A stretch of 64,000 nt of DNA, taken from positions 3,658,001 to 3,722,000 of the forward strand of contig JBLDXI010000013.1 of assembly GCA_047495785.1 (NCBI GenBank), read 5' to 3'. Below the pieces are notes generated by a model. It made no database searches, was not told where the DNA came from, and worked only from the letters and a program-made list of their open reading frames with translations. Source of the stretch: Lepidodermella squamata. Its lineage: Eukaryota > Animalia > Gastrotricha. Shown one piece after another: positions 33,485 to 64,000 of this stretch (the first letter of the stretch is position 1; each line of letters opens with the position of its first letter). A program made the translations under genes and the position numbers.

Positions 33485-34346
33485 CACAGGAAAAAAAAGG
33501 CATGAATTCAGGCTTTTTGCTAACATTAGCGAGCTCATACGCGATCCTTGTAATTCGGGCCCTATGCGTATCCTTATTCATGCCTTTTTAGAAAAGGCAT
33601 TAACCGCATGAACGTTTTTTACAGCCCCTGAATTCATGGGTTTTTAGTTTTTAGGATGTGTGAATATTTAAATGAGGGAAAAAATAGAGAGCAGAAAAAA
33701 TGACGCATTGGCGGGGACTCGAACCCTAGTCTCTAGAGTTACAGGCGAGGATTCTTACCACTTTACTACCAATGCTTAGATGAAAACTAATGCTCACATC
33801 GCCTAATCATCACCTTTTTCTGTTGGACTTGTGCTTTTTCAAATGAAGAATTTTCAGCGCCGAAACACTGGCATTTGGGCCGATGCGCCGCAGCTTTTTT
33901 AACACAGAAATGCTCAATTCCAATCTATACTGTAACCAAGATGCAATCTGGGTAATTTACGATCACTCGAATTGAAATAATTGATATCCTATTGATCATC
34001 GTGGAGAGTTTTCTGCTTTCTAAAGCTAAGAGATATAAAACTTGATTGAAATTGGGTGGATACCTCGTCTTGATGCTTATTGTAGCCCGTAAAGTTCAGT
34101 AACTGAAGAATAAATATCAATGCAGTGTGTTATTTCAATTCAATTTAATTGAAATATAATGCGCTTTGAAAAGCATGAAAATCAAGCACATGATTTACAA
34201 GCTTTCATAAAAAAGCGTGAATTCGGGTCGCAAAAGTCCCTGTATTTCATGCCCCCAAGTTAGGGCTCGATTTTTTTCCCCGAATTCATGTCGCGTGCTG
34301 AGATTCATGCCTTTGAAAACGGAATTCATGCCTTTTTTTTCCTGTG
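33485..34346. mobile_element. CACTA/EnSpm-like (CMC superfamily) non-autonomous element
   Basis: Perfect 25-bp TIR CACAGGAAAAAAAAGGCATGAATTC, 2-bp CG duplication, repeated CATGAA/TGAATTCATG subterminal motifs. Confidence 0.8.
33704..33775 (-). pseudogene. tRNA-Gly-derived pseudogene or Pol III promoter cassette inside the transposon
   Basis: GCATTGGTAGTAAAGTGGTAAGAATCCTCGCCTGTAACTCTAGAGACTAGGGTTCGAGTCCCCGCCAATGCG: perfect 7-bp acceptor stem GCATTGG/CCAATGC as in eukaryotic tRNA-Gly, A box, B box GGTTCGAGTCC, T6 tract 3 nt downstream; anticodon stem unpaired. Confidence 0.72.
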
Positions 34347-38163: not shown

Positions 38164-39526
38164 GACTCTAAACCAATTATCAATGTCATCGATCAATTGA
38201 GATCATTACTACGTCAACATCGGTTACATTGATTGAAAAGAAGGTTATCGAGGATTCTTTTGCCGCTCTCGTTCGAAATCCAGCAATAAAGATTTAATTA
38301 TGCATTGCGAAAGCACACATTATCAAATAAATCAAACGAAATGAATGTCACTCGCTGTTAGCCTTAGTCTAAATTATCGCCGGTCTTTATTCACATTGCC
38401 GCATTATCTCAAGAAAAAAGCTGATTAACTAGGGCACCATCTGGAAAATTCAGCACGTCTAAAATGTCCCACTTAGAAAATTATTGGTCGACGGTTCGCC
38501 CCATGTTGCAGTCCCCATTTTCAAGGTGGATTGAAAGCTTAGTCTTATAAGCATTTCGCGTCCTTGTTATAAACAAGATTAATCGAAGAAAATATTCCCA
38601 TCGTGTTTGACCAATAGCTTTGCCGGATATTTGAAGTAGGGGCCTAGAAGAAAGAAGAGGATTTGAAGAAGGGGCGAAACAGGTTCTAGCTAATCTAATG
38701 CTAAAAGGGTTTGTCAGTAGCTCGAGGCTTCTCTTTCGCTCAGAAGCATTTTGAAGTTGTCAGGAAACGATAATTGAATCAGTTCGACATAACTTACCCT
38801 CGAGACTGCCACTTACATTATTCCGTTGAGTGACGGGTTTCACAAGCGTAGGTAATTTGCGTATGGTGACGTTTCAACTAAATAAGGGGAGTATACAAGA
38901 CAACTTGAACAGGCCACTGTGTCATACCATCCACTTAACATGTAAATGGGCCCAATTATCCTACTTATCAATGCTCCAGACTCCAGACACTGGGTGCCCA
39001 ATTTCTAGATCCAGGAACTAGTATACTGTACTTCATAGGAGTAATAACGGATTATTCGACTTGATAGATGCATGGATGCCCAACAATAATAGTGATGAGA
39101 TTGGTGTTGCCACCTGGCTTCCGCTAAGTACCGGTCTCTCAACCCAACACAGAGGCCATAACGCAGCAACGGATCATCAGATTGGAGCTCCATTGATGGA
39201 TGACCAGCAAGGCTGCTTGCTGTGCACACTGTGTGGTCAAACCCCAAAGTGGCTTTCCTAACACCAAGCACCCATATGTAAAGAGTTTTCTACGGGTTCT
39301 AAGATCCACCATCACAGAATTAGCCATAGACACACATCTTCACCTAGTTAGTTGTATTTCAACAGACAATTTGGGGACTTGGACTATCTAGACAGTCTCT
39401 CCTACAGTTGGGAATTCATTAGTGTCGGGCTATCAGCTGCATCGGAAGTGCCCCGCAACAACTCATCACTTGGGAGTCACTTAAAGAGCCTCGAATTATC
39501 TATTGCGTAGCGCTAAACTTCTATTT

Positions 39527-41911
39527 ATGTCCACAATATTTGGCTCTGTTATTCAGATTGCATTTTTAACTCAAATTATCATGCCTATCCTGTTTCTGAT
39601 GAGCATGTTAAGCTCGTATCTTATGGCAACGGAGAGTTCCCCATCGAAACCATATACTTTGGACATTTTATCCCTCACCGATGTCGACGGGGTAGCTGGA
39701 ACTGATTTCTTCGCTTGTCGAGCCGCCCAGCAGATGGTTGTCGACATTGTCAATACTAGGAACGATATCTTACCCAACTACCAAGTCTCGCTCGACTATC
39801 GCAAAGAAGGTTTCATTGGAACCTCTGTCGTTCACGTTACTTACAGCTTTATCCGGAAACCTCGCAATAGTTCTACAATCATGTCACCTATCGCCATTGG
39901 CCCGTTTTTCTCAGGTGCATGTAAAGCTCTTGGATCTTTCGTCCATCACGAGAATATGGTGGCGATCGGCTTGTCCTGTACCTCGCCAAGCATTAGTGCG
40001 AAGAGGAATTTATATCCTAATTTCTACCGGGTAAAAAGCCCGTGCCAGGCTAGTCTCGTTGCCAGGCTACACTTCATGAAAACCCTCGCAAAGGACTGGA
40101 AAAGGATAGCAATCCTGTTCCAACGGACGGCAACAAATGCTGGTCAGAACGAGCTGGCAATGTACTTTTTCAATTTAGCAACAGAAGCTGGTTACGAAGT
40201 TGTCACTTATGAAGCTAGTCCTGACTTTGGTGATGACCTTATGGCTAGCCTCAAGAAACTGGATGTTCGGATAATCACAGTTGAATCAGGAGATTACTTG
40301 TCTTATTTGACTTTTCTATGCCAGGCTTACCGCAATGATCTGAAAGGTCCGAGATACATGTTTTTCCTACCATCTGCACAGTTCTCCTTCGTCGAAGTTC
40401 TGCCGTCGAGCATCAAATGTAGCATGAACGAAATTCTCGAGCAAATGAAGATAACCCTATTGATAGGAGCTCCTTTGGATGCAGTCGCTGGGACTCATAG
40501 TAATTACAGTTCTCTAGGGCACGATTTGGCAAGCTTTGAAGCAGAATACTATCCTCGTTTCAATCAATCGAAGAACAGGGGCGATTATGTGTTCCGCCAC
40601 ACCTGTTACGACCTGACGCTCCAAGCCGTCATAAAGCTGCACCAGGCTGATCTACAATTACGAAAGCAGAACCTATCCTTGGCTGATTATAAATCGTTTC
40701 CAGAACAGATTTCTCGGATAGTAAACGAAACTGTAGCTTATGGCGAGGATGTCTACCAGGTGAGATTCGGTCGATTTCATTATTCGAAAAGATTGGAATT
40801 CGACTATGAGCCACAGTTGATCGCAACCTACTCCCCTGTAACCAAATCAATGCAGGATCGATACGTCATTACATGCCGAGAAGATGATTTCATCAACTGC
40901 GATAATTACACTTCACTCCAAATGAAAGCCATACTGCCTATTTTGACCGCGATTCCTAAGGATGGTCCGACAATGCAGAGAACGTTTCAAACCTTTGATC
41001 TACCTGGTTTTGCTGTTACAATTTGCGTCTCTGGTTGCCTCTCGCTACTTCAGCTGATATTCACATGCGACTTTTCGAAGAGATCTTATCTCCGACCTGA
41101 ATTCATCGGATCTTGCTTTGGATTGATTTTGCTCAATACTGCGGCAGTGGCGTTCACTTCGCCGAAAAACTTGGTAGGATCTTCGTCCTGTATTCTCCAA
41201 ATCTTGCTATCAACATTCGGAGTGTCCTGGCTTCATCTTACGATTCTAATCGGGATTTTGAGAGGTTTCGCAAAGCTTCGATATCGAAAGTCAATTAAAG
41301 CTCGAGCGAAGAGTTGGAAACAATTCTCACCCCCGGAATCCTCCTCAAAGCTTTCCAATGCCCCGGAAAGCTCAAGAGCAGGGTTAAAACTGCACCGGTT
41401 GAGGCTCAGGTCAAATTTCAAGCTGAGGAAGTACGTTGTGATTGCGGTTTCAATAGGCAGTGCAACGTGCTTACTGCTAACAGCATGGATGCTCGAAGAC
41501 TTTCATGGCTTGAAAACTTTCATCACAACCATCACCTACGACGAAGTTTCAGATGTCCAAACTGAAGTCTGGAGTGTTGTATGCGACTTGTCCCCAGGCT
41601 CTTACCCGACATGGCTTGGGTTGATAATTGCTGTCAATTTAATACCACCGATTTCAGGCGCAATTTCAACCCTGAGATTCGCCCAGCAATTGCTAATCGG
41701 CCGCTCGAAACTTGTCTGGGAAGTCAAATGTTACGTAATGGCTAATCTAGGTTTATTGCCGCTGTTTTTCGCTTTTCTAGCCATAGCTTTGATGTCAAAC
41801 TCCGCGTTCATGTTCGATATTGTCATGTGTGTAGGGTGTCTAGTTTATTCAAGTAGTGTCTTTCTCGTTTTAAACATTTCGAAGATCTTGAAACTCGGTG
41901 TCAGAAACTAG
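39527..41911 (+). CDS. Orphan class C GPCR paralog 2, intronless CDS
   Basis: Collinear paralog of 35848-38163. The start is uncertain (ATG 39527 or 39581; the ORF track begins at TTG 39503). Confidence 0.85.
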   Translation: MSTIFGSVIQIAFLTQIIMPILFLMSMLSSYLMATESSPSKPYTLDILSLTDVDGVAGTDFFACRAAQQMVVDIVNTRNDILPNYQVSLDYRKEGFIGTSVVHVTYSFIRKPRNSSTIMSPIAIGPFFSGACKALGSFVHHENMVAIGLSCTSPSISAKRNLYPNFYRVKSPCQASLVARLHFMKTLAKDWKRIAILFQRTATNAGQNELAMYFFNLATEAGYEVVTYEASPDFGDDLMASLKKLDVRIITVESGDYLSYLTFLCQAYRNDLKGPRYMFFLPSAQFSFVEVLPSSIKCSMNEILEQMKITLLIGAPLDAVAGTHSNYSSLGHDLASFEAEYYPRFNQSKNRGDYVFRHTCYDLTLQAVIKLHQADLQLRKQNLSLADYKSFPEQISRIVNETVAYGEDVYQVRFGRFHYSKRLEFDYEPQLIATYSPVTKSMQDRYVITCREDDFINCDNYTSLQMKAILPILTAIPKDGPTMQRTFQTFDLPGFAVTICVSGCLSLLQLIFTCDFSKRSYLRPEFIGSCFGLILLNTAAVAFTSPKNLVGSSSCILQILLSTFGVSWLHLTILIGILRGFAKLRYRKSIKARAKSWKQFSPPESSSKLSNAPESSRAGLKLHRLRLRSNFKLRKYVVIAVSIGSATCLLLTAWMLEDFHGLKTFITTITYDEVSDVQTEVWSVVCDLSPGSYPTWLGLIIAVNLIPPISGAISTLRFAQQLLIGRSKLVWEVKCYVMANLGLLPLFFAFLAIALMSNSAFMFDIVMCVGCLVYSSSVFLVLNISKILKLGVRN

Positions 41912-43364: not shown

Positions 43365-46145
43365 TCATTGTTCGTCATCGGAGCCTGAAATTTTGAAGCT
43401 AGTTCGGCCTTTTATCTCGAGTCGCGATTTTCCATTCGCTATTTTTGGCACTGTTCCATTGTCGGAACTTCTGAATGAACTGTCTCGAGCTAGCAACGAA
43501 GCAGCCGGCGCCATAGAATCGAAATTGTTAGCACTGCTGACCCGGTCGAGAGCCATAGAATCACTCGCCCTCAAACTGTTATCATTCCGCCGCAATCTAA
43601 AAGACGAGCCTTTTCGAAGAATCGAAGAATTCCTCTCAAGTGCTGCCGATGACGCTTCAGGAGATTTTCGGCGAATAATGACAAATGACGACCAGAACGG
43701 GTTAAGCGTACAGTCGACCAATTTTAGGACTATCGAATAGTGAATCATCGTCGATAGCGCTCGCCGTTGCGGCTGTTGCGCGTCGTAGCCGAGGTAGCCG
43801 AGTGCCGCTATTAGCGGCGCCATGCAAATGATATATTGGAGCAGGGACCAGGCTGCAAGGCGTGCTAGCACTTGCTCACGCCGCTTTTGATGCCGAAATT
43901 TATAGGCCATTATGTCGCCATCGCTTTTAGATCTGGTGATTTTCTTTTCTATTCTATGGGATACAGCATGAGCTCGGCGGATAAATATCCATAAATACCT
44001 GAAATCACGAGAAACAATTAATTAAGGGTCCAACAAATTTCCAACGAATCTTTGGTTCCTAATATTGTAAGCCCTTAAATAATTTCAAGTTTATGAAATT
44101 TTTAATTTTAATTTAATTTTTGTAATTTTCAATTTTTCAATTCTGGGATTTTTTATTTCAGCTACCTAAAACCCAATGTATGTGAAAAAATTAAACAAGA
44201 TGCTCCCAAGTCTGCAGATTTTGAATGCTCGAATGCTGAATTATTACTATTAAAAATTGGCCGTTAATTATGAAATTTAAAAAAAAATTTAACGAATTAA
44301 AAAACGTACGAATAATTGAAAATTGTGATCAGCAGAGGTAGCGTCATCGAAAATATGCCGTAAAGGTAGCTGATGGCTCCTGTGTTGAAAGTCAGCCTAG
44401 ATTCGATTGCGAAGCAAACATAAACCGGTTCGGCACCATTTTTCACCCCGCCGATGTAGGCTGGGAGAACCTGCATGGCATTGTCAGCATGCATCTGCCA
44501 TACATTCGCCGCGACTATGCAGAGAAAGACGCCGATAAGGGTGATGAGGAGCAGCCAGAAACGAGCGCGACAGGGCGCTCCTGTTTGTTGAGGCATTGAT
44601 GCGTTCATCGTGGTAACGCTGAGGTTACGCTCGACGCTAATTAGGGCGAATATGTAAAGGGTCATTGTCATGAGAACGCTGGAAACTGAAGTCGACATTA
44701 TACAGCCGAATAGGCCGAATGGGTCGTCAACTGACATTCTAAAAATAGCACAAAAAATTAGCTTCCGAAGTCAAGTAATTATAATCCTATTTTTAGTAAA
44801 GTAATCGATCGATTAAAAATCCTAATCCTAAAATTCTAAAATTGTAAATAATTTGAAGAAAATAAAAGTACAAATTTGAATATGGTTTACAAATTTAATC
44901 CGTGAATATCAATGAGAGAGCAAATTAATTCGAAATGTCGCGCAACTTAATGTCGAGTCTCGCGCTTTATTACTTTGCGCACACCTTAATGTTTTGCGCG
45001 ACGTTTTGATTTTATTTGCGCGCTGTTTCGAATTAATTTGCGCGACGCCTGTCCAAGACCCAATATCGAATAAGTTTTTTCTAAAAAGAAGGAAACTCAG
45101 AAAGTGTTTTAGGGATCGAGAACTAACTTTGAGGCTCCAGCACTACAGATGTTCCCAAAACAAGAATTTCCGAGGTTCAGCTTTTCTTTAAAATACAAAT
45201 CTTTCATGAGTTTTCTCAACCAATATATCTCAAATAAGCTTCTTAGTTCTGCAATACGGAGCCGATATCGATTTCTGGAATGCATTTATAAGAAGTGATT
45301 TTTCCGATATGAGCAGCCTCAAATCCAGCATTGAAAAAAATCCCATGGCAAAGGGTAACAAAGCCGCAAAATAAAAAATTCATGTTTGTAGGATGCAATA
45401 CTATTGATCAAAAAAGAAAAAACCCGACATTGGAAAAAATCAGAAAATTCTCATCAAATGCATTACGCCATTTGTTTCTATTTCCGGTATACTGTTACGG
45501 CGCGCAAATCGCGATATAGCCTTGAATTTTAACAAAATCATTCAAAATTTCGAATCAATTAAAAAAGCTTGAAATGTCTTCTTCCATGCTCAGAAAATTT
45601 CAAAAGACTTGCCACTGAAAATGCCACTGAAAATAAAAAATCCGGAGAAATTTTTTCCAGTCGGATGAAATACCGAAAATCCCGAACTGTGAGTTGTTCC
45701 GGGTTTTCTTCGGCAAATTTCAAATTTATTCGATGAAAAGGCATTTTTGACGACAATTTACGAAACCCTGTCTACCTAAATCATGTAATTTTATAAAATA
45801 CTGTAAAAAAATTCCTCACCTTTGAATTCCCTTCATTATTCCCATGGCGGCGTAGACCAGATTGCAAACAACAAGCGAGCTTGTAAGCATTAGGAATTCG
45901 CGGCTTATTCCTCGCCGGCGTTTGAAGTTCCACAACGCGATCAAATTGCAAGGAAACGCGCAAAAACTGACCGCCATAATTATCGCCGCTTCTACATAAT
46001 TGCAGTACCAATCGGATCTGTTAAATTGCTGCAGATACGCGAACAGACACTCATCCGCGGTGCCGTTGAATTCCGGTATGCAAATGTAAGACTTGTTGAC
46101 GGAGCTATCGACTGGAGCTACAAGACTCCAACATGTCTCTGTCAT
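43365..46145 (-). CDS. Orphan rhodopsin-like (class A) GPCR, about 462 aa, 3 exons
   Basis: Exons 46145-45820, 44738-44310 and 43998-43365 total 1389 nt in frame; TM1 PCNL; TM3 C..LISVERN; ECL2 Cys; TM5 LPLLITIFNY; TM6 YIICMAP; TM7 LNPFW; Ser-rich tail. Confidence 0.82.
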
Positions 46146-47626: not shown

Positions 47627-48397
47627 TTAATTCGAGCAGTCAGTCACGTCGAGACCATTGTGCCATCGGTACCAAACTAAAAATTGAAAAAATTAGAAAA
47701 ACATTATTTTAATTAACAATTTATTTTTACCTGAGGAGGGAAAGGTGAATAAAGTCGATAGAAGCCAGCAAACATTAGCCGCGTTCAACACGAGGGAAAT
47801 CGCCGCCATAACCGTAGCGCAGCCAATCGAATTACAACCAGCAAGTTCCGGGTTCAAATTAGGCGCGTAATCTTCCGAGGGTGGCACAAGCAGTCCAGCC
47901 AGCAGAATCCCGACGCAAACAACCGAACCAGCGGCTAGAAAGGACCTGAATAGCGTCGTTTGCCTCAGCACAAGTTCCCGCTTGTCGTAATCGCCGAGTT
48001 GTAGCATTAAAAGCCGACCGAAAATCGCGAAAATTTGACTGGCGTTAATTCCCATTGAGATTGAAAATGCTGCTAGGAGGGTTTTGCTATCGCCCTGGAA
48101 GAGCTTTTTAACGACGAAGAACAGCCCTAGGCCGTCGACGATCAAAGCCAGGGTGGCTAGAGAGGCGAGTAGGATTAGGAAGAATTTGCGATCGCCGGCC
48201 ATAGGGGCGGATTTTGCGGCCTGGCGTTCGGCGTCGTAGGCTTCGAGTTTCCTCGCCGCCCCTCGGACTATTTCGTCGTTGGTCATAACGGAGCCGGCGT
48301 CGCTGGATGGGTAGCGGCGGATGGAGAGTGTACCGACTGTTGGTACCCCACCTGATGCGATGTTATTACTGTTAGCTGCCGCCTGGTCGCTTTTCAT
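47627..48397 (-). CDS. Four-TM protein TM-A (divergent family member, 238 aa)
   Basis: Exons 48397-47731 and 47676-47627 in frame; four hydrophobic segments; GCNSIGCATVM matches the family motif. Confidence 0.72.
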
Positions 48398-50521
48398 GCC
48401 AGATACAAGTGAAAGATCCGATAAGAAAATACTATAGGCCTGAGCCTGAATACTATAACAAAGGTATTATTAAAATTATAGAAGCCGGTGATTTCAGCAA
48501 AAAAGGTCGCGTGAGATGTAAGGAACCAAAAATTGAGTTGGAAACTTTTCTCCCAAGACTTTTCTCTCTAATCAGCGATGACAGATGAAAAAATTGTTCG
48601 AGAATGTTTTGTATTTAAAGACAATCGAATCTCCCGGACAATCGAATAAAGAAAAATTAAGTTTCCCTGCTTTTATTTCGATAAATTGCAATGGTATTCC
48701 TATAGTATATTCCTATAGTAAATGGTTCCTACAAAAATTCTTGAGATATTTCAAATTTCTTGATTATATCAGAAATCCAAATAAATTGCGTTTAAATTTT
48801 GCGTGAATTTCCATGAAGGGTCAAATTATCAATTTGAGAATAAGGATGAACCACAAGATAAGAAAAGGAATATACTCCGAAGTTTTAAAAGCCGGAAAGC
48901 CGTTTGAAAACGCCCCAAAATTGGACATTTCTATTCGTAATTTTAAATAACTTGTTAGAGATGGCTATCGATTTATGCTTTAAAGATTATGCCCTCATCA
49001 TTCAGCCGTGCGATTTATATAGGATAGGAACGATCATTGGCTCTAAGGTAAAGCCGACGTTTTCGAGGCCGTAGAAAGAACTCGGTTGTCGTAAGTTTTG
49101 GCGAGCTCTCAACTTTTCGACACGACAGCCCTTGATAGAAAACTAAGCGTGAGCAAAAGATCAGAGAAGTAGGACAGTAAGGATAAGGAATCGTCCTATA
49201 AGGGTCCGCCTCTTTCTGGTCTTTAGCTGAGTATACCACACGGACCTAACCCTAACCTGGTAGGGATCCCTACCATCCCATGCGGTACTTTGCTTTGCAA
49301 TGGAGGGAGATAGAGAGACAGATGCTCAAGATATATGGTCCACCTTTCAAGAGGTTTTCAAGATGGAATCAGGATCAAACCACTCAACCCAGGTCCCAAC
49401 CTCCATTAATCATTAAAATTGTATCAAAATAATAAATTTATGATGAAAAGATATCTCTAGTTCTAATTGAATTATAAAAAAAATTGTAAAGAGATACGAT
49501 GATAATTTTTCAAAGGAATATATTAAAATTTATTGCCGCCAGTTGTTGTTTCAAAATGTTTTGCAAGACTTTTCAAATGATGACGATAAGCGCCCGAGTT
49601 GCGGCACAATACTTTTTATTTCACCTAAAAAGAGATACACAGTACCTATATCAGTATGTTTTGATGGAGAGCGTGTAAAAAGCGGGCTCGTCACCATCAA
49701 CCAGCCACTCACTCACTCACTCACCTGTGCGCGCGAGAAGCGGGTGTAATAATAATGATAAAGCGCGCGCGCGCACATTTTAATGCGATACGCGCTTTGT
49801 TTTTGCGCCGCGCTAGATATAGGGCCAATTTACTTTTATTTGTGCGCGCCTCTGGCTATACGCAAAGAGCGTGGTGATATGCTGGTGGCGGTGCCGCGCA
49901 CTCTCGCCCGCCGTAAAGGTATCGCCTTAGCCACTATTAGCCGCAGCGTGTGTTTCCCGTCATTCAGCGCCGTTAATGTGTTTTGTTAGTGTTTGCTGTG
50001 ACTCGCTCACCTTGTTAAGCCGTCACATCGGCGCCGCGCTACACCTTGCACACGGCACAGGATAACAAAAATACGGCTTTTCGTTGCCTATTTTCACAAT
50101 ATCTCGCCGTGTTTATCCGGCGCCCGGCGAGATTTTCTGAGCCCGCCAGCAATAAAAAAGGCTTACGTAGGTTGAGTGTATATATAAATCGGGACCCTTT
50201 AAAGCTCGAGCAGCGGCGACTCGACCCGGAAACGCGCAAGGTGCGAGACAAGTGAGAAAAATGACTATCGCGCTTACTTACAAATCCAATGTTTATTCTG
50301 ACATATCGCGGTATACCTAAGACAAATAATATTCCATTATATATATATCACAGCAGTTCATTCAAACAATAATAATATTTATTATTCAAAAATTATTTCA
50401 AGTTGAAAACAAGACAATAATATAAGAAGCAAAATATATCAATCAATAAAACTGGTGCTTGCCAGAATCCTAGAAAATATATGGCAGGTTCGATTCTCTC
50501 GGTGGTATACATAGTATTGAT

Positions 50522-52268
50522 TTAGACTTTTTCTTCCTGAGATGCTGGCTGTGAGGTAGTCGCCTGATTTTGCCCGCCAGCATTCGTTTGCTGACCGGCA
50601 TTTTCTTCATCCTCACAGCAGATTCCGCAGCAGAGTATGCAGCAGCATGAGCAAATGCCGACGCAGAAAGCACACGGCAGGCAGATGGCGAGTAGGGCGA
50701 TGCGGCATCCGTAGTAAATACTCGCTGGAAAATAATATAAAAAATGGTTTAATATGAGGAATTCAACTGTGGGAAAATGCTCATTCCGAATTCAAGAGAA
50801 TCCTCCTTAATAGCTTCTATAGCAGTCCGATGTTATTTGTTGTTTTTTGGGACCTGCTTGACCCTTCAAATATTTGCACTGGCAATGTTAATGAAGTATT
50901 AATATGGGTCGACATATTGCGGGTGAACAAAAATATTGCACCACTCAAAAGTTATCAGCTCACAGAAGCGGTGAATGAATTCCAAGTATCAATTATTTTA
51001 CTAACAATTGCCATCTTTTTCAAGATTAAGATCCAGAAAGCGAGTTAGCTGAACAATAAAAATTGGACCTGAAGCTAAAATTGAGTGTTGATTTAAGGGT
51101 GGCATCCTGATCGCTCAAAATTGCCGATGAAAAAGCTATCCTTAAACAAAATTTTAGGATATTTTAATCATAGCTGAATCGGGTATCCAGAAGGGTATCC
51201 CTAATCCCTAATACAGGCTTTCGAGTCTGAATATTCGCACCACGAAAAGAGAGGTTGCACCAGTAAAATTAGTTTGCTATTTTCTGACATTTTGGTATTT
51301 CAACTATTTGCTGTACCTTGGGATTAAATCTTGGCAAGATCTTGGCGGATCTTTCCAAGATTCATCAAAGATCTGAATTAAAGAATTTAAAATTTATACA
51401 AGCTTAAGGATTCTCATTCGAGCTCTCTAACCTCCTCTTAATCATCTTACAAACAGGTTTCACAGGCTGCTGATTGAAGGCTGAGGTATGGCTCGTAAAC
51501 AAAAGGCCGATAGCGCGTCATAGTGAGATCTATCGATTAGGAATAGTAAGAAAAAATATTATATCATTGGGGAAACCTCTAGACCATAAAGATTACATAA
51601 AATTCAGTGGAATCTATAAGCGGAGTTTAGTTCTGGAATTTGGACTACCCGAATCTTCGCAGTTTTTGTCTCTTAAAAAATTCCGCTTTCAAGGCTTCCG
51701 ATATCAACAAATGCTTACCACAAACTGCCATAATGTTGGCACAGCCCCATCCATCGGCGCACCCGAACGACTCAGCGGGTGCGATAGGGGTGCTCGTTCG
51801 CAGGGCATGAACCAACAGGCCAAACGCGACACAGCCTCCAACAAAGTAAAACAAGTTGACCCCACCTGCAAAATAAATTACTTAGCTATTAACGTGCTGA
51901 AAAAATTGAAAAAATCTTCACGAACAATACAAAGTATCCCGCCAACGGCTTGACGGTTCCCCAACTTGTTTATCGCAAGTCAGCAGCATAAGCATTAAAT
52001 TCAGCAAAATTTCAGCACTAGTGATGCCGATGCAAGTTGCGAACGTGATTTTAAAGCACTGCTCATCGCCTCGAAATTGGCCCTGTAGCGTGTACATTAA
52101 ACCGGCGATGACGAAGCCGAGAATGCAGAAATTCGACCACATGTGGCCGCCCTCGCGTTTCGGGCTCGGTTTAACCGCCTTGGCCGCAATAGCCGCGGTT
52201 TTGCCGGTATTTTGGCCCGTGGTCAGGGCGACAGCTTGCTGCTGCTGGGTGTTATCAGTCGCCGACAT
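50522..52268 (-). CDS. Four-TM Cys-rich protein TM-B (about 230 aa)
   Basis: Exons 52268 to about 51926 (donor uncertain), 51865-51719 and 50724-50522; ALTTGQNTGK, KREGGHMWSN, FGCADGWGCANIM, tail CLPCAFCVGICSCCCILCCGICC. Confidence 0.8.
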
Positions 52269-52757
52269 TTCGCCCTTTGTGTTTTTTAGACCATAACAAT
52301 GTGAAGCTTCGTGCATTAGCGGTGGTAAAACCTTGAGCGAAGAATATAAGTATATATACGGCTGTGTGAAAAATAATTTGCAATTTAATATTCCATCAGC
52401 TCGGACGCGGCACACCGCCGCGTGTGGTCATTGTTTCCTTTCGCACACTATCGATAATTATCATCCTGCGTGAGCGTCAAAAATCGATTGGCCAAATATA
52501 GCATTTGCGCATTAAAATTAATATAATAATGCGCGCTCTGAAATTTCTAGGCGATTTACTTGTTTTTATTCGCATAACATCCAGGTATATAATAGGCAAT
52601 TTCATTGTCAGTTTTTTTAATCACAGTAAAATGAAGCTGAGTTGAATCGAAGGAGATAATCAATTATCCAGGCAGTGGAGCAAATTTCAAAATTTTGAAT
52701 TTTTTTAAATCGGTGGAATTATAAGATTTCGGAGTTCTCGAATGTTTAACAGATTTT

Positions 52758-53603
52758 TTAAAGGCGTGACGTGGCTTGTTTAGGTTGTTGAGCTTCAGCG
52801 TCACGGTTCGTTGATGATGAAGCGGCGGCTCCAGCAACGCAACAGGCCGAGCAGGCGCAGCAGCCGAGGCAGCAGAGGCACGGCAGGCAGATAACAATGG
52901 CGAGAAGTCGGAGACCATAAACCACAGCAGCTAAAAAAATATAAAAAATATAATTTAAATATTAATTTAAAATTAAATTAATTATTTCATGCGCATGAAT
53001 TTTAGAAAAATATACGCATTTTTAATTTTCCAACAATTCTCAAAATTTTATAATTTTTTTATAAATTCTTCTGAATGTTTTAAATTTCATTTACGGCTTA
53101 CCAATAACTCCCATGATGTTAGCACAGCCGAATCCATTAGCGCAGCCATATTTTTCATTCGGCTCCTCAGGTTTGCTAGTAAGTAAGGCCGCCACAAGAA
53201 GGCCGAAACAAACGCCGCAACTCGCGAGGTAAATCAAATTCGTCAAGGCGGCGAGACAAGCCGGGCCGCATTTTTTACAACACCCCGCATTTTTGTCATC
53301 ATCCTTATCGTCTTTCCGAGAGATGATTATGATGATGATGTTGAGGATTGTTTCGAAGCCACTGATTCCGATCGCGCTGGCGAAGGCGACTTTGAACAAG
53401 TGACCGTCGCCCCGGACTTGCTCTTTGATTGTTAGAACGAGACCGGCGATGCAAAACGATATGACGACGATATTTGACCACAAATGGCTGCCCTCGCGTT
53501 TTCGATTAGGCTGGACGGCCTTTGCGGCTAAACTTGGCGTTTTGCCGGTATCTTGGCCGGTCGTTAAAGACTGGGCCTGTTGCCGATTCGTCTGAGCTGA
53601 CAT
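52758..53603 (-). CDS. Four-TM Cys-rich protein TM-C (224 aa)
   Basis: Exons 53603-53102 and 52930-52758; SLTTGQDTGK, KREGSHLWSN, YGCANGFGCANIM, CLPCLCCLGCCACSACC. Confidence 0.85.
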
Positions 53604-55243
53604 TAAATTTTCTACAGGAAAATCGAAGAATTATATTAGAAAATCAGTTCACTGTTTATTAATCGAAGAAATTTTTCATTTTTTTTCACAGCTCTATTTA
53701 AAAATTTGGTAATAGGTTTATAACCGAGAAACACTATTCATATGGGCGGTGTATACAAAATTTGTTTATCACATGACCGCGCCATAATGACTTTGGTATT
53801 TGGAAAATGGTAAATAAAATTGAAGCCATGGTAGCGCCGCATTGAGGCCGATATTGATGATTGCGGCAAAACGTCTGCGGCTTGGGTCATCGTCATCAAA
53901 ACGCACGCCCCGCTGCGACGTGACCGCTTGAAATGTCACTGCTTTTTTATTGAGCGCACACGCGTGCTGTGAAAGCCGATGAAGTATTAGGCCACACCAT
54001 TCGTAATTTTGAAAATAATAAATATAAATAGCCGAAAACAGATGCTATTTTTAGATGATGCGATGCGTGATTTTGAATAGTAAAAAGACAGGTTTGAAAA
54101 CTAGTTTCCTTGCAAGTTATACTCGCTCTTATATTTAAGGTATTATCGGCAAAAAAATCGAAAAACATTATCTTTTGATAACCTAATATGAATGAAATTC
54201 CTCTTGAATTCCTGTGATTCACTGATGTTACTTTTTTTTGTAAAAGGCGAAAATTTGCGGCTGTTCCTCAGCGTGAATTTAACTGTGTCAATGAAAGTCC
54301 GATAAAAGGCCACTAAATTGCACTTGGACATGCGCACTTGAATACCTTATTACCTTATGCAGGGTAATGCAGGCTATTAATTAATGCAGGGCTATTTATT
54401 ATTGGGTCTAATTTGTGTTTTGCGAGGTTCCAGCATTAGATTTGAGCGTCCGACTCGAATTTTTCTGAATTTCAGCTTTCATATCCACACAGTTGTCCAC
54501 ATGACCATGAGATCTTTCATTTAAGCTTGCACCAGCTATAGCTGTTGAAACAAATTATGGCTTCAAATTCAATTATGGCTTCCGAGATAGCCAATATCGA
54601 AAAAATCAGTGATTTTTAAATTTCGATACTTGGAATTAATCGATATTTGCTCTTTAGTCTGAACTCTCATAGCGCAAAATACGTCTGATCGGTCTTTTAG
54701 CACTTTGAGTATTGAGAGTCGCGACTCATATTAGAACATGCACATGGGTCTAAATATTTGTACCACTTAAAATGAGGTTCCAGCACTAAATTTAAGCTTC
54801 CTGACACTACATTTTTCACATTCTTTGGAATTTCGGCTTTTTCGTTTTTTGATGGATACTGATGCCCTCCTTTAGCCTATGATCCTTTTAGCTACCTGGC
54901 GCCCTAAGTTACGTAGAAAAATAATCGATGTAGGGTTCCACGACGGCTGATATCGGAAAAATCACTGGTTTGTAAATCGATACTTGGAATCGATATCAGC
55001 TCCGCAGGCTAAGTATAGCTCATATACGGCCCGCTCATAGCGCAAAAATACGCGTAATATTGATTATGCAAAATGATATTATAGTGAGAAATTGAAAATA
55101 TTTATTTCAAATATCAGCTGCTGTAAAAATGAGAATAAAATCAACGGCAAACTTATGACGTAGCACAATGTCCTTTGCGAAAACGTATATAGCCATAATG
55201 ATTTTTTCGATCGGCCACCAATTCGATCACCTATCCAAGCTTA

Positions 55244-56128
55244 TCATTGCCTGGACGGCGACGAAGTCGGTTGTTGATCTGATGTTGGCTGGCGAGTAAC
55301 CGTTGAAGCAGTCGACTGCTGTGTGGCACGAGCTGAGCCACGCTCGGCCGAGTTGGGCGAAGAGCCATTGCTGTTCTGCGGGCAGCAACAGCCCATAAAG
55401 ATGGCACATGGTAGGCAAATGGCTATAATAAGAACTCGGAGGCCGTATATAACACAAGCTATATAGAAAACAGGGATGAATTCCGATTGGAAGATTAACT
55501 TTAGGATTCATTCTTACCGACTATTGCCATAACATTCGCACACCCGAAACCGCTCGCACATCCGTATTGCTCGCTGTAAGGCTCGTTATGGCTTGTAGCC
55601 AAAGCTGCAACTAGCAGCCCGAAACAACCACATGAACCGGCCAGGTAAACCATGTTGATAAAAACTGCAATAAATTTTTGAATAAATAATAGGAGAAGTT
55701 TAATGGTTTTTCATTGTTTTTCAAAAATTTCAATTTTTTAATTTTTAATTTTAATCCTGCTTACTTGCCAGACAGCAGGCTCCACATAACCGGCAGCAGC
55801 CTTCTTCGTTAATGTCCTTTGTGCCATGTCTTGTGATGATCATCAGCAGAATATTGAGTAAAATCTCCCCGCCACTGATGCCGATCGAATTGGCAAACGC
55901 AATTATGAACATGTAATGGCTGCCGCGAACCCGAAACTGCAGCGTGAGTACCAGCCCGGCGATGCAGAACGCGAGTACGATCAGGTTCGACCACAAATGG
56001 CCGCCCTCGCGCTTCTTGTTCGGCTGCGTGGCATTGGCGGCGAGAGCTGGCGGCGCCGACTTGCCCGTGTCGCGGCCCGTGGTCAGCGAGCGGGCCGCCT
56101 GCCGATCGGCCGAGTCGGCAGAGGACAT
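55244..56128 (-). CDS. Four-TM Cys-rich protein TM-D (241 aa)
   Basis: Exons 56128-55765, 55664-55518 and 55458-55244 in frame; SLTTGRDTGK, KREGGHLWSN, YGCASGFGCANVM, CLPCAIFMGCCC. Confidence 0.85.
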
Positions 56129-56240
56129 TTCCGCAAGATAATCCAAAGCAATTGTGATTATAACAGACTAAAAAGCGAACGACGCAAAAATTATAATTCT
56201 CAGGAATTATTCTGAAATTTTGAACTTTCCAACTTTCCTT

Positions 56241-56437
56241 TTGGGCAGACCGTCATAACAACAATAAGCCAAAACATAATCACGACAAAACAGCAGTTTT
56301 TCAATTTGCGTCATAACAGCAGAAATTAGACGCATCTTTTACAAAGAAAGTTTTCGCTGTTTCGTCGCGAAATAAAAAGTTTGCTGTTTTGTCACATTTG
56401 CTGTTCTGCGCAGTTGCTGTTTTGTCGCCATGCCCAA
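56241..56437. mobile_element. Small foldback/MITE-like element upstream of TM-D
   Basis: TTGGGCA..TGCCCAA termini; GACAAAACAGCA / TGCTGTTTTGTC inverted subrepeats. Confidence 0.5.
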
Positions 56438-58297
56438 TTTTATAAGCGCATTTCTAATTTTGTTTCTTTTTTGAGAAAATTAAGATAAATCAAATCGGAA
56501 AATCAAATCCCAGAAATGGAATTTTAAACCTGTCTCTCGATTTTATGAGCAAAAGAAGAAACTGCTTTTTACAGAATGCTCCGCTTCCGTGATGTCACCC
56601 CAAAATCACCCCTTTTTGAACCCTCAAAAAAACCTCCGGGAAAACCCATATTTCCCAACGGATTGAGGTCAAAGGTCAAAACCAATCCTAATAATCAAAA
56701 CTTATCGATTAAAATGAAACAAAAAATAATAATTTATACCATTTTGTTGCTTTGAAAATATGAGGATTCAAGGTCGTTTACATTCGTTTTTCGGTGAGAC
56801 AGGTATTTTTCTTCTTTAGATTTTATTACATGAAAATAGCATTCTGACACCGCTTTTTTCTTGTCATCTACCGCCTTAAAACTAACGTGAACAAAAAATC
56901 CGACTTTTTTAACGACGCTGACGATGTTATAAAGATCTGGTGGGTGAGTATAGCGCGTCAAAAACACCTTCACTTTGCCTGTAAACATTAAAGAAGCATA
57001 CACGAGTTTGATAAACTACCATGTTAGTCGCGGTTGAAGAATTCATTTCAAACAATTAATAATATTCCCAGAAGCTAAAATATGCGGAAATAAAGGAAAT
57101 TAAGGAAATTGGAAATTTGAAAATCGATTTTTTACAAATCGAACACGTAATATCGAAAAGGGATGAAACAGACGAACGGTGAATGATCTATTGCTTTCTA
57201 TTATTAGGTACATACCTACATACATACCTATAGAACATATGCTCATCTGTTTTCTGGACTGATATAGCATAGACAGGGGAATGGTACGCTAACATTGCAG
57301 ATAGATGTTATATAACGGTTGCTTGATTTCGCTTAACACGGCTATTTATTGTTATAACATTATACGATGCTATGGTTTTCATTATTCAAACCACGGGCGA
57401 TTTATCGCATTATTCCGAGTATTGCCTATAAGGAGCCGAGGGTAAAACTAATAGGCAAGCGCTGAATATTTCCTGTGGTTGTTTGCTTTAAGGATGCTGA
57501 GGAATAATTTGCTATTGGCGATATGTCCACCTTGAAGGTCTTCAAAAAACAGCCTCAATTGCATCCTAATATAAGAGTTTAGGGTTCATTTGTCCGTATC
57601 TAGTAGTTAAGGAAAGCTAAATAGTGTTCGCGGGTCTGCAAATGGGGCTTTATCTCCATAGCAGCCGTAATGAATGAATGGATCAAGTACCTTTCTGCAC
57701 TTTCGCTGTATAAACGCGCGGCCTGGGCAAATGAAACCGCCGCTGGGCGTAGTAATAATTAGTTCGAGTCGTTGAAAGATGGCGTCACGCACCTAAGACC
57801 ACGCGTTCAATTGAGCTGAATGGGCGGGCCATCGCAATTATAATATTTATTCTTACCAGTTTATATACCTATAAAAACAAGGCTGAAGATTATAATCGCT
57901 CACCTCAGATCATCAAATTTATTTTCCAAATTTTTTCAAACAATTTTTTTCCGGCAGCATATCAAAAAGAAGCAGTTATCCATTTTATGCAGTTAAATAA
58001 TGTTGAATTTCACAAATAATAACAATAATAGCATAAATCGGCAACACGAATAATTAAATATCAAGTTGTATAATAATATAAGAGAAGGCTTTTTGATGTT
58101 TTAAAATGTTTTTTTTCAGCAGAAAAAATTGTACAGGTAAATTAAACAGCACGTGATGATTTAAAGCATTCCCACAATAATTCAGAATCTATGCAGCAAA
58201 AATGTTGGAAGATGATGCAACAAATAAGCTTTCGACGAGCACACACGCTATATCCGTCAATATTGATGGCAGGTATTTAAAATTGGGTGTTTGCGGT

Positions 58298-59671
58298 TTA
58301 GAGATTCGCGTTTTGCTGCGCCTCGCCGCCGTCACCAGCCGCTGCAGCAGCGCAACACGCCGAACAGGCGCAGCATCCGGCGCAGATAATGCACGGCAGG
58401 CAGATCATGATTGCTAGAACACGGAAGCCGTAGATGATGCAAGCTAGAAAAAAAAGAAAAATGGAAAAATTATTTGAATTTATACAGGTAATCCTACCAA
58501 GTATGGGAACAATGTTAAGCGCAATTTGCGCAAACGAAAACTGCGCAACAAAAATTGAGCAGGCAATTTAGACCAAAACGACAAAAGAGCAAAATTAATT
58601 AAGAGATTTAACCGAGATCATTTGCTCAACGAATTGCTCAACGATAAAAGATATTAGGAATTTAGAGCAACGACTACTGAGCAACCTCTTCATTTTTTAA
58701 TAAAAGCTGCGCAAATTTCTTTGCTATAATATCACTGTGGAAATAATTGCTCTTTTGTCGTTTTTCGCTTTTTCGCTGTTTCATTTTGCTCTTTTTACGC
58801 TGCGCATTTGTTGTTTGCGCCAAAAGAGCGGAACAAAACTCAACCGTATAAGGATCAGAAGAACAAGTTTGCAGTATTTTTTTTTAATTTTAGGGAGCCA
58901 AATTTTGTAAGAAATTTAAACTCATTTTGAAATTTGTCCCAAAGTCGAAAAAATCGAAAATTATTCTATTATTCCTCATTCCGTAATAACCAATAGGATC
59001 CTAATTTATGATAATTTTTGAAAGATGGTCACTAAGATGGTAAGATGGCGGATGGTAACTTAGAATATAGTGATAAAAATGGCTCACCAATGATAGCCAT
59101 GATGTTGGCACATCCGAAGCCATTCGCACAGCCATAAATTTCATTCGGTTCAATTTCTTTGCTCGACAAAAGAGCCGCGACAAGGAAACCAAAACTGACA
59201 CAACAGCCGACAAGGTAAATGATGTTTGTGATACCTGAAAAATTAAATAAGTAATTAAATCGAAAGGCTTGAGGTGAGAACGATAAGTTTAGTTGGAAGC
59301 AAGTTTTGAATTTCATTACCTGACAAGCAGCAAACTCCACAGACTTTGCAGCACCCTGTTTGCTGGCCATCCTCGCCGGTCTTAGGCTTACAACACGCCA
59401 TCATGATGATGTTAAGGATGATTTCAGCACCAGTAACCCCGATGGCTACGGCGAACGCAATGAGGAAAAGTCCACTTTCGCCGCGAACCTGCTGCTTGAT
59501 GGTCAGCACAAGACCAGCAATGCAGAAGGCGAGTACGAAAATGTTTGACCATAAATGACCACCCTCGCGTTTTCGACTCGGCTGCTGAGCTTTCGCCGCC
59601 AGGCTTCGATTCTTCCGAGTATCCTGACCTGTTGTCAGCGACTGAGCGGCTTGTTGATTAGCATCAGCCAT
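58298..59671 (-). CDS. Four-TM Cys-rich protein TM-E (214 aa)
   Basis: Exons 59671-59320, 59234-59088 and 58443-58298 in frame; SLTTGQDTRK, KREGGHLWSN, YGCANGFGCANIM, CLPCIICAGCCACSACC. Confidence 0.87.
58511..58834. mobile_element. Foldback/MITE-like element in TM-E intron 2
   Basis: Inverted subrepeats AAAACGACAAAAGAGCAA / TTGCTCTTTTGTCGTTTT and GCGCAAAC / GTTTGCGC. Confidence 0.5.
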
Positions 59672-62459
59672 CTTTCAGTTGTTTAATCAGTCTAGATATT
59701 CTGAATATTCAAAAATTAATTGCCAATTGAAAAAAAATGTAAAATTGGTTGAAAAGTTGCCGGAAAGAGCAGCTATATAAATCGAAATGAGGAAATAATT
59801 TTCTAAACAATTCTCGAATTTCAATACCCGAAAAAACCAGGTTTCTATATTGTCGGGATTGATTTAGAGGCAAGGCTCGATCTCAAAAAATTAGAATTTT
59901 CTCCACATTTTAGAAAATTATTTAAAAAATAAAATGAAAAGCAAAGTTAAAGTGGGACAAATTGGGAAATTTTTAACATTTTTTCCGAATCATTAAAATT
60001 AGTTGCGGGCATTCGAAATCGTGTGGAGCGCCTTTTTCCTGAGTGTAATCTTGTAAAAAAAGTAGGTCATTGCGAAGTTGAAGATGGTGCATTCAAATCG
60101 CGGGTTATTGCGTAGCAATTAACGTCGCGACGCCGTCTGACCTTGATGCGTTGAAAACAGTGAGGCTGGCGTTGGCTAGTTAGTACAAAACGCGCGCGGC
60201 TATGAACGCAATTTCAGTGTTAATCTAACGCTGATGAAAATTGTTTGTTTGTTTGTTTCTTAGCGACTTCGTGATCTTCACCGCGTACAAAGGTGTCTGG
60301 GCTGCTGTCTATGCGCTCGGCAATTACTATACTAGAGTCTGGTTGGTACGCAGCTGCCGAGTAGAATACGCGCGATGACAAAAATGCGCGGCGATAAATT
60401 CTTGTTTTATTTATTTTACAGCTTGGCTACTGCATATTAGTGTTGTCGGCAAATAATTTGGCTACGCCATCGCCACTCAAGTGTTAGAAGGGTTATACGT
60501 TTTCGCCGTGTCGCATTTGCATTATTTTTAACCGCTTATCACGGCACGCTTGCCGAGTCATCGCTCGCGTGTGCTGATGAGCTTCAGGCGCTGCCGCTGC
60601 CGCGATTACGCACCACGATGAGCCTGGAATGGTTGCATTTTTTTTGTTTCATCCTCGAGTTGTTTTCTACCTATTATGCGTAAGCGCTCTTACAGAAGAT
60701 GAAACACTGCACAAGCATGTCTTCAGTATTTTTCCCCTCCTAATGGCCTAATGCGGAAAATTATGATTAAAACCGCGAATAGTCAGCCTTCTAAAAATTT
60801 TTTTAAAACTTTCTTGGTCCTTATTTGGCATTGCCGAACTTCGATAGTTTCGGCTGAGCTCAAAACTAAATTTCATTTTTTTAAATTAAAAGAAAAAAAT
60901 TCTGTGAAATGGAATCAAAATTGAGGAAAAAGATTCGATAGACTGATCGGAACTTGATTAATCAGATAAAATTAATGATTCCTAAGGTTAAATTTAAGTT
61001 TTAGGAGGATGATGTGCTCCTATGACCTATTTTTCCTATAGAGAGTTTGGAGGCGAAAATTAGCAAAAAATATTAGGAAATTATCGCGATAAAATTTGTT
61101 ATTGATAAACGACAGGCCATGTTTTGTTTGTGCCACCGGCCAACAATTTCGCGGCATCCTTATTTTCATCGCATTTCATCACCGCAAATATTTTCCGGCC
61201 GAGCAGATGTTTCGCGCGATGATATGAAACCAGCAATATATTATACAACTACGACCACAGCGGTTTAGAGAAGAGAGAAGTACAGTAGTAGTGAGAATCA
61301 ACAAACCTCTCGTATTTTTACCAAGTGTTATATGAGCTTTTTTCAAGATTATTTAGCAGCTATTTTTCTTATAATATGTGAAAAGGTATACTTTTTATGA
61401 TATCCAATGGTGTCATAGCCAGCGGTCAGATGCGAAAAGCGAACATCATCATGCACGGTCTCACACGGCAGCACACAAAAAATGACACGCGGTAGTTAAC
61501 ACGCGTGACAGGAAAAGTGAAAAAAAATTTCCAAGTCGCATGAAAACAGCCTTAATAAAACTGTGGGCGCAAAACTCAAGTGCGGCCTTGAGATGCCTGC
61601 TGCTCGCAGAGAATAAGGCGGTTAGCGTATATATCTACCTAAGAATGCATTATACGTCAAGTGTATTTTTGGAACGTGATATTACGGCGGTATATAAGGC
61701 TTTTGGCAAATACGTACAGCCCCCACCTGTGCATTTCACACATTGAGTTAACATTTTCATCAGCCTTTACTTTGGTTTAATATATAAGCCGCATATAACA
61801 GCAGGACAAACAGAAAAAAACCGGCGAGAAGCACTTGCCGCCTTACATAATAATGTTGTGATAAAGGTGGGTCGAGAGTCGAGGTGCCTTTGTAAAACGG
61901 GTATAACTAGCTGGTAATTGAATAAATTTGATACTTTTTTTCAACCAGTTTCAGCATTTTTTCATTTAGCCTTCAGAAAAAACTCAAGCACAGCGTGGGA
62001 GCATTTTCCTTAGCCGCAAATCTATTGAATCATTCATTTTGCTTACAAATCACGAAATTGCAGGGAAGCAGGTCCTGGGTCGTCACCAAGCCACTCTTCG
62101 GTTTCTCTTCGCATTTCACCCTAAGTATAGTGATATTTTCTCATTGTGAGTACGGTATCAATATAGTTCTTGTCATCATTTGCTTGAAAATCTCTGGAAA
62201 GCAACTGAATCCCAATTTTGTTATGAGGAGCAACACATGTTCGGACATTATACTCCCGTTTTGCAGGTCAAAGGTCACACGTGCACACGTGATCAAAACG
62301 TGTGATCAAAACACTAAACTTTAAGGTTGTTGCTAGTGTGGTAGTTTCGTCGTTTCGTCATTTCGTCATTTCGTCACCATGAAAAAAAAATTTGATTTTA
62401 TTTGTACTTGATCGGTTCTTATGAGTAGACAAAATTCCTTAGTATTTTTGTTCCAAGTG

Positions 62460-62553
62460 GTCCGATTTGGGATCACCACGGTGAAAATTATATTTAAAAT
62501 TTTTATAGGCGATTTTTAAATAAAATTTTCACCGCGGTGATCCCAAATCGGAC
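62460..62553. repeat. Near-perfect 94-bp hairpin
   Basis: About 40-bp arms GTCCGATTTGGGATCACC(A/G)CGGTGAAAATT(A/T)TATTTAAAA with 2 mismatches and a loop of about 14 nt. Confidence 0.85.
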
Positions 62554-62635
62554 TTCTATCACTTTGATTAATATCTCACGGTCAAATACCATGGTATTTA
62601 TTACCATAAACGAAGTTATTTTTTTCCACTGTCAT

Positions 62636-63282
62636 TCAAATCGCAGCTTCCACGCCTTGCGATGCTGGGGCTTGTCTGGAACCGCAGCAAGCCATGAAGG
62701 CAAGGAAAAACAGAGTCTTAACAATTGTCAGAACTCGACCACCGAATAATATGCAGGCTAAAAAGAGGTGAAGGAGGCTGAAGATGAAATCGATTGTTAA
62801 CACTAGCTGAGCTTACCTATAATCCCCATGATATTAGCACATCCGAAGCCATTTGCACAACCGTAAACGTCGTTGAATTCCAGGTTACTACTTGTAGCTA
62901 AAGCTGCGACCAGCAAACCGAATGCCGTGATACAGCAGGAGGCGTAAAACAGGTTTATAAGAACTGAAAAAGCAAAAAATGAGCCTTATTCTTCATTCTT
63001 CGAAATCGTGGCATTACTCATACCTGTGACGTAGGGGTTTTCGCATAATTCACGCTTAGTTCGTCGCAAGATTGAGCTGATAGATTCTGCTATCAATTCC
63101 GTCGCACTGTACGCTACTCCAAAGGCAAAGGCGACAAGGAATAGGTCGGGGTTACCTCGGACCAAGAGCTTGCCAGTTAGGCCTAGACCGGCTGCCGTGA
63201 AAGCAAGAAGAACAACACTCCCAGACACACTGAACGAATCTTGGCTACCTCCACGGTGCGGATTGTTGGTAAGATCATCCAT
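62636..63282 (-). CDS. Four-TM protein TM-F (175 aa, short N-terminus)
   Basis: Exons 63282-63024, 62963-62817 and 62757-62636 in frame; YGCANGFGCANIMGII; tail FMACCGSRQAP. Confidence 0.82.
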
Positions 63283-63783
63283 GAAACGATGCAGTTATTG
63301 TGTTTTCGTGTATTCGGGAGAAAAACTCTCTAGTTTTCTATTCAAATTAGAACTATTGCACACGAATGAACTGGGAGGTTTCATTTTTTGCCTCATGTGA
63401 GTTTACGAAATATTTCGTCATTCCTTTCTGTTTATACCTCTTACTTCTTAGCACCTAGGCATAAAGACTTTAAATGACAAATCTCTTTATTTTTAGAAAG
63501 GCATCCATTTTCTCTGTATAACTTTGTCATGACGATCAGGTGTACGAATTTTGTTAAATTTTTGAAAAAAATATACGACATAGAGACAAGTAAATCTGTA
63601 AGATGACGGCGAAATTAAATTCCAAGCCACTGAAACGCCAAGCTTTACTTAATCTTTCGCGTTTAATTGTAGTCACCCTAGATATATTTTCTTGGGACTG
63701 GTTTCAATAGTTCTCATCTAGCATCATTATCTGCTTGAAAATCCTTGATTCTTTATTTACCGGTTCTCATGAATATAATCAAT

Positions 63784-64000
63784 TTAGTATTTATTTTCCT
63801 CTTCCATTTCATTCCCAGCTTCCACGCCTCGCGATGTTGGGGCTTGTCTGGAACCGCAGCAAGCCATGAAGGCAAGGAAAACCAGAGTCTTAACAATAGT
63901 CAGAACTCGACCACCGAATCCGATGCAGGCTGCAGAGAAGAATGAATTTGACAATGAAAGCGATAGTTAATTAACCCAACACACCTATAATCCCCATGAT
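63784..64000 (-). CDS. Four-TM protein TM-G, 3' end only (recent duplicate of TM-F; runs off the window)
   Basis: IMGII, then a GT..AG intron, then ACIGFGGRVLTIVKTLVFLAFMACCGSRQAPTSRGVEAGNEMEEENKY-TAA; nucleotide sequence very close to the last exon of TM-F. Confidence 0.8.

Follow-up and report, generated by a model that had tools for sequence, protein, structure and literature searches.

The window analysed here, a stretch of 64,000 nucleotides from the gastrotrich Lepidodermella squamata (contig JBLDXI010000013.1, called C13 below, positions 3,658,001 to 3,722,000; G000:C13:3658001-3722000), carries an array of genes for small Cys-rich proteins of a family with four predicted transmembrane (TM) helices. 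The assembly has a size of 121 Mb, and its introns are very short. Paralogous exons were located by the listing of open reading frames (ORFs) and by tblastn with ORF pieces, and these two together with a profile search confine the family paralogs to 47.6-64.0 kb of the window, all of them on the minus strand. The exon junctions were read base by base and placed by homology to intronless copies, because the automatic splice-site scorer was ambiguous. The rebuilt gene models are listed below, with protein lengths in amino acids (aa) and, for genes A and C, the expectation value (E) against the family profile.

47627..48397, minus strand: gene A, a divergent member of 238 aa; exons 48397-47731 and 47676-47627, intron of 54 nt; profile E 1.3e-48.
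50522..52268, minus strand: gene B, about 222-229 aa; exon 1 from 52268 to 51947 or 51926 (donor uncertain), exon 2 51865-51719 (147 nt), exon 3 50724-50522.
52758..53603, minus strand: gene C, 224 aa; exons 53603-53102 and 52930-52758; profile E 8.1e-57.
55244..56128, minus strand: gene D, 241 aa from the second ATG; exons 56128-55765, 55664-55518 (147 nt) and 55458-55244; rebuilt model and profile search.
58298..59671, minus strand: gene E, 214 aa with 21 Cys; exons 59671-59320, 59234-59088 (147 nt) and 58443-58298; rebuilt model and profile search.
59089..59145, minus strand: family signature of gene E, Y-G-C-A-N-G-F-G-C-A-N-I-M-A-I-I, at the end of the TM3-TM4 loop and the start of TM4.
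62636..63282, minus strand: gene F, 175 aa; exons 63282-63024, 62963-62817 (147 nt) and 62757-62636; first unit of a repeat formed by F, G and H.
63784..64000, minus strand: gene G, 3' part only; exon 3 63929-63784 and the last 16 nt of exon 2 (64000-63985), the remainder lying beyond the window end.

The introns of the rebuilt models are of GT-AG type and in phase 1. The model of gene B is uncertain at its first junction, because no consensus phase-1 donor follows exon 1 and the options are GTTGGC or GTTCGT only. Gene C has no intron 1, and therefore holds TM1 to TM3 and the signature motif in a single ORF. The original prediction, made from the letters of the window, had described seven same-strand paralogs, the complete ones of 175-241 aa, with an exon 2 of exactly 147 nt in B, D, E and F; both points are reproduced by the rebuilt models.

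Four hydrophobic segments are present in every model (Kyte-Doolittle windows), in agreement with the four helices first proposed. The predicted first extracellular loop (ECL1, between TM1 and TM2) is about 8-10 residues long without Cys, and the second one (ECL2, between TM3 and TM4) has about 20 residues with two Cys, which are exactly two in each of the seven proteins and both invariant. Among the other Cys counted in loops and flanks, 57 of 58 fall in the TM2-TM3 loop and the stretch after TM4, both of which are predicted to be internal, with as many as about 10 of them in one string, and the Cys content of a protein reaches 9.8% (gene E). These counts bear out the Cys pair expected in the outer TM3-TM4 loop and the Cys clusters expected next to the membrane, on its predicted inner side, in particular the Cys-rich TM2-TM3 loop of C, D and E and the poly-Cys string after TM4 in B-E. 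The signatures, read from column counts, are L-A-F-x-x-A-G-L-x-L-T in TM1; R-G in ECL1 (the short TM1-TM2 loop with R/Q-G noticed earlier), with Gly in 14 of 14 aligned copies; A-F-A...S-x-x-E in TM2, with Glu in 13 of 14; F-x-L-L-x-x-A-L in TM3; G-C-x-N-G-(F/Y)-G-C-A-N-I-M at the ECL2/TM4 boundary, with G, C, G and C in 16 of 16 and A-N in 15 of 16; and Y-G-x-R in TM4, with Arg in 13 of 16. Family membership was read from the TM1, ECL1, TM2, ECL2/TM4 and TM4 signatures together with the phase-1 intron after I-M-x-I-I. The half of ECL2 adjoining TM4 is the most conserved part of the protein. The motif G-C-A-(N/D/S)-G-(F/W)-G-C-A-N-(I/V)-M, called near-invariant before TM4 in the original prediction, is indeed present, but gene A deviates from it (GCNSIGCATVM) and has no Cys string. 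Gene B has no Cys-rich inner loop; it retains the ECL2 motif (GCADGWGCANIM) and has a 12-Cys string.

The extent of the family was mapped by a six-frame search of the whole genome, by the flanking sequence and by local profile searches. Overall, at least 21 family loci are found genome-wide, which is a lower bound. The array had been described as holding at least seven genes; seven are in the window, and it goes on past the window end with H, I, J, a pseudogene fragment and L. The loci outside the window are the following.

C13 3.7218-3.7258 Mb: genes G, H, I and J, past the window end (full copy of G at G000:C13:3721799-3722440, in the flanking sequence L026).
L026:8121-8381 (= G000:C13:3729121-3729381), minus strand: exon-1-like fragment with an in-frame stop, nearest to gene L, inside the extended array.
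C13 3.7344-3.7352 Mb: gene L, past the window end.
C13 3.6432-3.6484 Mb: three further copies, about 10 kb before the window.
C13 near 3.503-3.507 Mb: three copies.
Contigs C6 and C7: two copies and one copy, respectively.

The lone fragment at C13:3729121-3729381 is a pseudogene remnant. A tandem repeat with a unit of 1,171 bp comprises genes F, G and H; neighbouring units agree in 92% of their DNA, and the repeat occupies 62617-64000 of the window and runs on to about 65951 in L026. Their identity is patchy, in that exons 2-3 of G and H are identical while exon 1 is nearly identical in F and G, and this therefore suggests that the repeat was shaped by recent duplication plus gene conversion. 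The view of F and G as recent duplicates agrees with their synonymous divergence (dS) of 0.066, and that of a lineage-restricted, still-duplicating tetraspan family is likewise supported.

We then ask whether these loci are true genes. Rates of nonsynonymous to synonymous change (dN/dS) were computed on concatenated exon pieces. The older paralogs differ at a proportion pS of 0.73-0.85 of their synonymous sites, which is saturated, yet at a proportion pN of only 0.25-0.41 of their nonsynonymous sites, with the strongest constraint in exon 2; the young F/G/H set has a dN/dS of 0.4-0.6 at dS 0.07-0.15. From saturated synonymous sites with so low a pN, the array members are therefore judged, on sequence comparison, to be genes under selection. 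Chance similarity is excluded, because the profile E-values per exon range from 1e-17 to 1e-57 and homologues in other species share both the motif and the intron position. The last intron position is in fact conserved across species, since several relatives have ORFs that read into 'GK' or 'GQ' at precisely the place where the family has its last intron.

Such relatives are rare. The family profile, compared with 1.84 billion representative proteins, has 18 matches at E <= 1e-3 and nine at E <= 1e-10. The source was looked up for 11 of the 18, and all 11 come from ENA metagenome or Logan read-archive assemblies, none of them having an NCBI or UniRef record; a borderline cluster, P0018 (E 4.5e-4), is also in JGI. 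The motif scan of JGI metagenome contigs gave no true family member: of its six short matches, the four scored against the profile represent one motif-only sequence without TM helices, and the other two obtain no score with it. A word search with gene C has a single match, P0001, an intronless, full-length protein of 216 aa with 36% identity from eukaryote-like contigs in ENA metagenome assemblies, sharing the TM layout and the motif with the family and likewise having a Cys string. The ENA contigs fetched come from four assemblies and are the same or near-identical, with the genes again in tandem (three on L032, several on L046). No poly(A) or other sign of a transcript was seen on two read-archive contigs. 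Among the relatives, one gene joins three units in one polypeptide.

L046:9592-11466 (ENA ERZ23486787 scaffold_3033), plus strand: three-unit relative gene, three tetraspan units in one polypeptide with 12 TM helices.

The exons of this concatemer, three of which are the matches P0007, P0009 and P0017, run from TM3-TM4 of one unit through a charged linker into TM1-TM2 of the following unit, and its introns stand at the family's TM2/TM3 position. From such a natural concatemer we argue that the single-unit proteins may act as oligomers. In addition, its units have no Cys strings, nor does gene A, and the strings are therefore taken as accessory and not as the functional core.

The topology was considered from charge and from structure models. 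Summed over the seven proteins, the N-terminal flank and the TM2-TM3 loop have 29 and 24 Lys and Arg, respectively, against 15 and 5 for the TM1-TM2 and TM3-TM4 loops, the latter being acidic with 17 Asp and Glu; this asymmetry fits both ends lying inside the cell. Exon pieces, contiguous ORFs and the intronless P0001 were used for searches and folds, and the joined exons gave the translations and the hydropathy and charge values. Two AlphaFold2 models were made, one of P0001 with family alignment A3 and one of the uninterrupted first exon of gene A with alignment A5; both show four TM helices, as the original topology would have it, with a mean predicted local distance difference test score (pLDDT) of 82.1, a predicted template modelling score of 0.66-0.67, and the four long helices at pLDDT >90. 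Taken together, hydropathy, charge bias and the two AlphaFold models predict four membrane helices with both termini cytoplasmic. In the P0001 model, two isolated bridge residues (132 and 138) flank the ECL2 Cys pair. In gene A, Gln stands in place of the TM2 Glu and Asn in place of the TM4 Arg, a joint change which fits a buried pair; P0001 keeps the Glu and has Tyr at the Arg position, and the buried pair is therefore only a lead.

In structure comparison, the top Foldseek match is synaptogyrin (E 0.035), and CD20 chains have E values of 0.4-1.3. The gene A model matches synaptophysin with a score of 13.2, sarcospan with 12.9 and 12.3, FcεRI beta with 10.4 and CD20 with 9.3, and also LRRC8A, PRPH2/ROM1, synaptogyrin and uroplakin; the matches to sarcospan, synaptophysin, tetraspanins and CD20 are within the usual range for helical bundles. 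Feature and structure searches of the ESM Atlas give unnamed or fungal clusters at <=0.90, and TMEM179 at a TM score of 0.59. Among sequences, Pfam scans of the exon pieces, P0001 and 44 family sequences have scattered sub-threshold matches only (CD20, Claudin_2, DUF4199, viral gL and others), and the family profile finds nothing below E 0.2 among PDB sequences, with no CD20, FcεRI beta or sarcospan chain.

Known tetraspan families differ in their details as well. The family lacks the large second extracellular domain and the CCG motif of tetraspanins (PF00335; uroplakin, PRPH2/ROM1) and has no Pfam match to them; against claudin/PMP22 proteins (PF00822, PF13903), its ECL1 lacks both Cys and length, without the long W-GLW-C-C first loop, and Claudin_2 appears at E 0.03 in one of 44 sequences only. 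Thus the family is neither tetraspanin nor claudin, as was first stated. It has no PF01284 match to the MARVEL proteins (synaptophysin, synaptogyrin), to which the ECL2 motif and the Cys strings are foreign. The Cys run of CSPα is heavily palmitoylated, and the family strings resemble it in having roughly 10 Cys in fewer than 20 residues at the cytoplasmic face, by analogy and not homology; CSP is a soluble J-domain protein anchored by its string alone, whereas the family string extends a TM helix. Sarcospan is a useful functional analogue, having four TM helices with cytoplasmic ends, requiring Cys bridges in its TM3-TM4 loop for its structure, and forming homo-oligomers that serve as a scaffold (PMC3599653). 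Unlike sarcospan and CD20/MS4A, the present family has an ECL2 of about 20 residues with its own invariant G-C-x5-G-C-A-N, Cys strings on the inner side, and a conserved TM2 Glu and TM4 Arg. As judged by sequence, it is a new lineage-restricted tetraspan family without detectable homology to described ones.

The reading we prefer, with a probability of about 0.55, is that of a selected, lineage-restricted family of small four-helix-bundle proteins which oligomerise and either organise membranes or serve as auxiliary subunits, much as sarcospan, CD20, MARVEL proteins and tetraspanins do. The invariant G-C-x5-G-C-A-N would form a hairpin at the outer start of TM4, probably closed by a disulfide, and act as a structural or contact element shared by all members. 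Differences between the paralogs would come from the two terminal tails, from the inner loop and from the first half of ECL2, which is acidic and variable. The Cys strings of the inner side most likely carry several S-acyl groups each (palmitoylation), which would pin these segments to the inner leaflet. On such a scheme the proteins would be neither enzymes nor ligand-specific receptors.

Three specific roles had been offered in the original prediction, namely MS4A-like chemosensors, accessory proteins of G-protein-coupled receptors (GPCRs) and channel subunits, and none has gained support. The first would make the proteins divergent members of the CD20/MS4A-sarcospan group, acting like MS4A as chemoreceptors or receptor co-subunits. 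They do share with CD20/MS4A four TM helices, cytoplasmic termini and a larger, Cys-bearing outer TM3-TM4 loop; these features are generic to several tetraspan families, and in structure score the MARVEL proteins and tetraspanins do equally well. The best CD20 (PF04103) match reaches 16.0 bits (E 0.013), short of the cut-off of 27.9, and occurs in gene C only, or one of 44 family sequences, with no such match for the full-length P0001. Besides the lack of a CD20 or sarcospan chain among the PDB matches, we found no PF04103 gene over the cut-off in the animal's own genome. A published survey restricts MS4A to jawed vertebrates and judges invertebrate look-alikes to be spurious (PMC2826416), while the host of the present family is a small protostome-like invertebrate. 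A chemosensor role is further disfavoured by ECL2, which contains the most conserved part of the protein and not the most variable one: its TM4-side half is invariant among the paralogs, opposite to a variable ligand-binding loop. We consider this kinship unlikely. A GPCR-accessory role is without support, because the neighbours of the relatives elsewhere are different and unrelated genes (a solute symporter and an ABC transporter, a Cys-loop receptor and a RING-finger gene, trypsin genes).

In a channel role, several copies would assemble into an ion channel or pore, whose outer entrance would be formed by the invariant hairpin rich in Gly and Cys, and whose lining or gate would be provided by the TM2 Glu and TM4 Arg, taken as buried. 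The channel structures matched are generic ones with a poor root-mean-square deviation of up to 9.5 A, no pore is visible in the monomer model, and the Glu and Arg may simply pair with each other. We regard this role as slightly less probable than the MS4A kinship. The bolder form, in which three or more units, as in the concatemer, make up a previously unknown small channel or transporter with the disulfide-closed hairpin as its mouth, Glu/Arg as gate or ion path, and acylated strings setting its location in the membrane, is held to be equally doubtful. Still less probable are membrane-bound thiol-rich buffers, whose Cys strings would be free of acyl groups and would either bind metal (Cu, Zn or Cd) or serve as redox sinks: the strings stand in membrane-adjoining loops and tails, not in the bundle core, and such Cys are few or absent in gene A, in gene F (8 Cys) and in the concatenated relatives, with the rest of the protein conserved. 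Finally, the ORFs might be non-functional or mis-modelled fragments of a pseudogene array or a repeat, in favour of which one may cite that the array is read from genomic DNA alone, that gene B has no good first donor, and that one fragment beyond the window contains a stop. Against this, the exons are all open in about 20 copies despite saturated synonymous sites, intron positions and phases are kept within the genome and in other species, full-length intronless homologues exist, and the fold models are confident; this view is largely refuted already and seems very improbable.

Besides the array, the window has a few other features.

2790-3901, minus strand: two adjacent ORFs of 125 and 139 aa, resembling by eye part of a retroelement reverse transcriptase.
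30592-33194, minus strand: ORFs of 198 and 286 aa, no Pfam match for either; the 286-aa one has an N-terminal hydrophobic stretch (candidate signal peptide) and Thr/Pro-rich linkers.
33704-33775, minus strand: tRNA gene, Rfam 34.9 bits, the sole Rfam match in the window.
35848-38163 and 39503-41911, both plus strand: intronless paralogous genes (771 and 802 aa) in which a multi-pass membrane region comes after an ANF-receptor ligand-binding domain (E 1.5e-17 and 5.7e-14).
43365-44737, minus strand: two ORFs with weak rhodopsin-type seven-helix matches (E 8e-6 and 0.0017).

By their domains, the 771- and 802-aa pair look like very divergent class-C-type receptors, since a word search with the 771-aa gene has no relative at E <= 1e-10. 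The two ORFs at 43365-44737 are probably exons of one GPCR gene between this pair and the tetraspan array.

Absent from named protein records, the family has at least 21 loci in one genome. It would add to the small set of tetraspan scaffolds that organise membranes, namely tetraspanins, MARVEL proteins, CD20/sarcospan and claudins. Its Cys strings, joined directly to a TM helix, are an extreme example from nature, and its sharply conserved outer motif should be readily testable by mutation. It also gives an example of a lineage-specific membrane proteome which escapes standard annotation where short introns combine with a lack of homologues.

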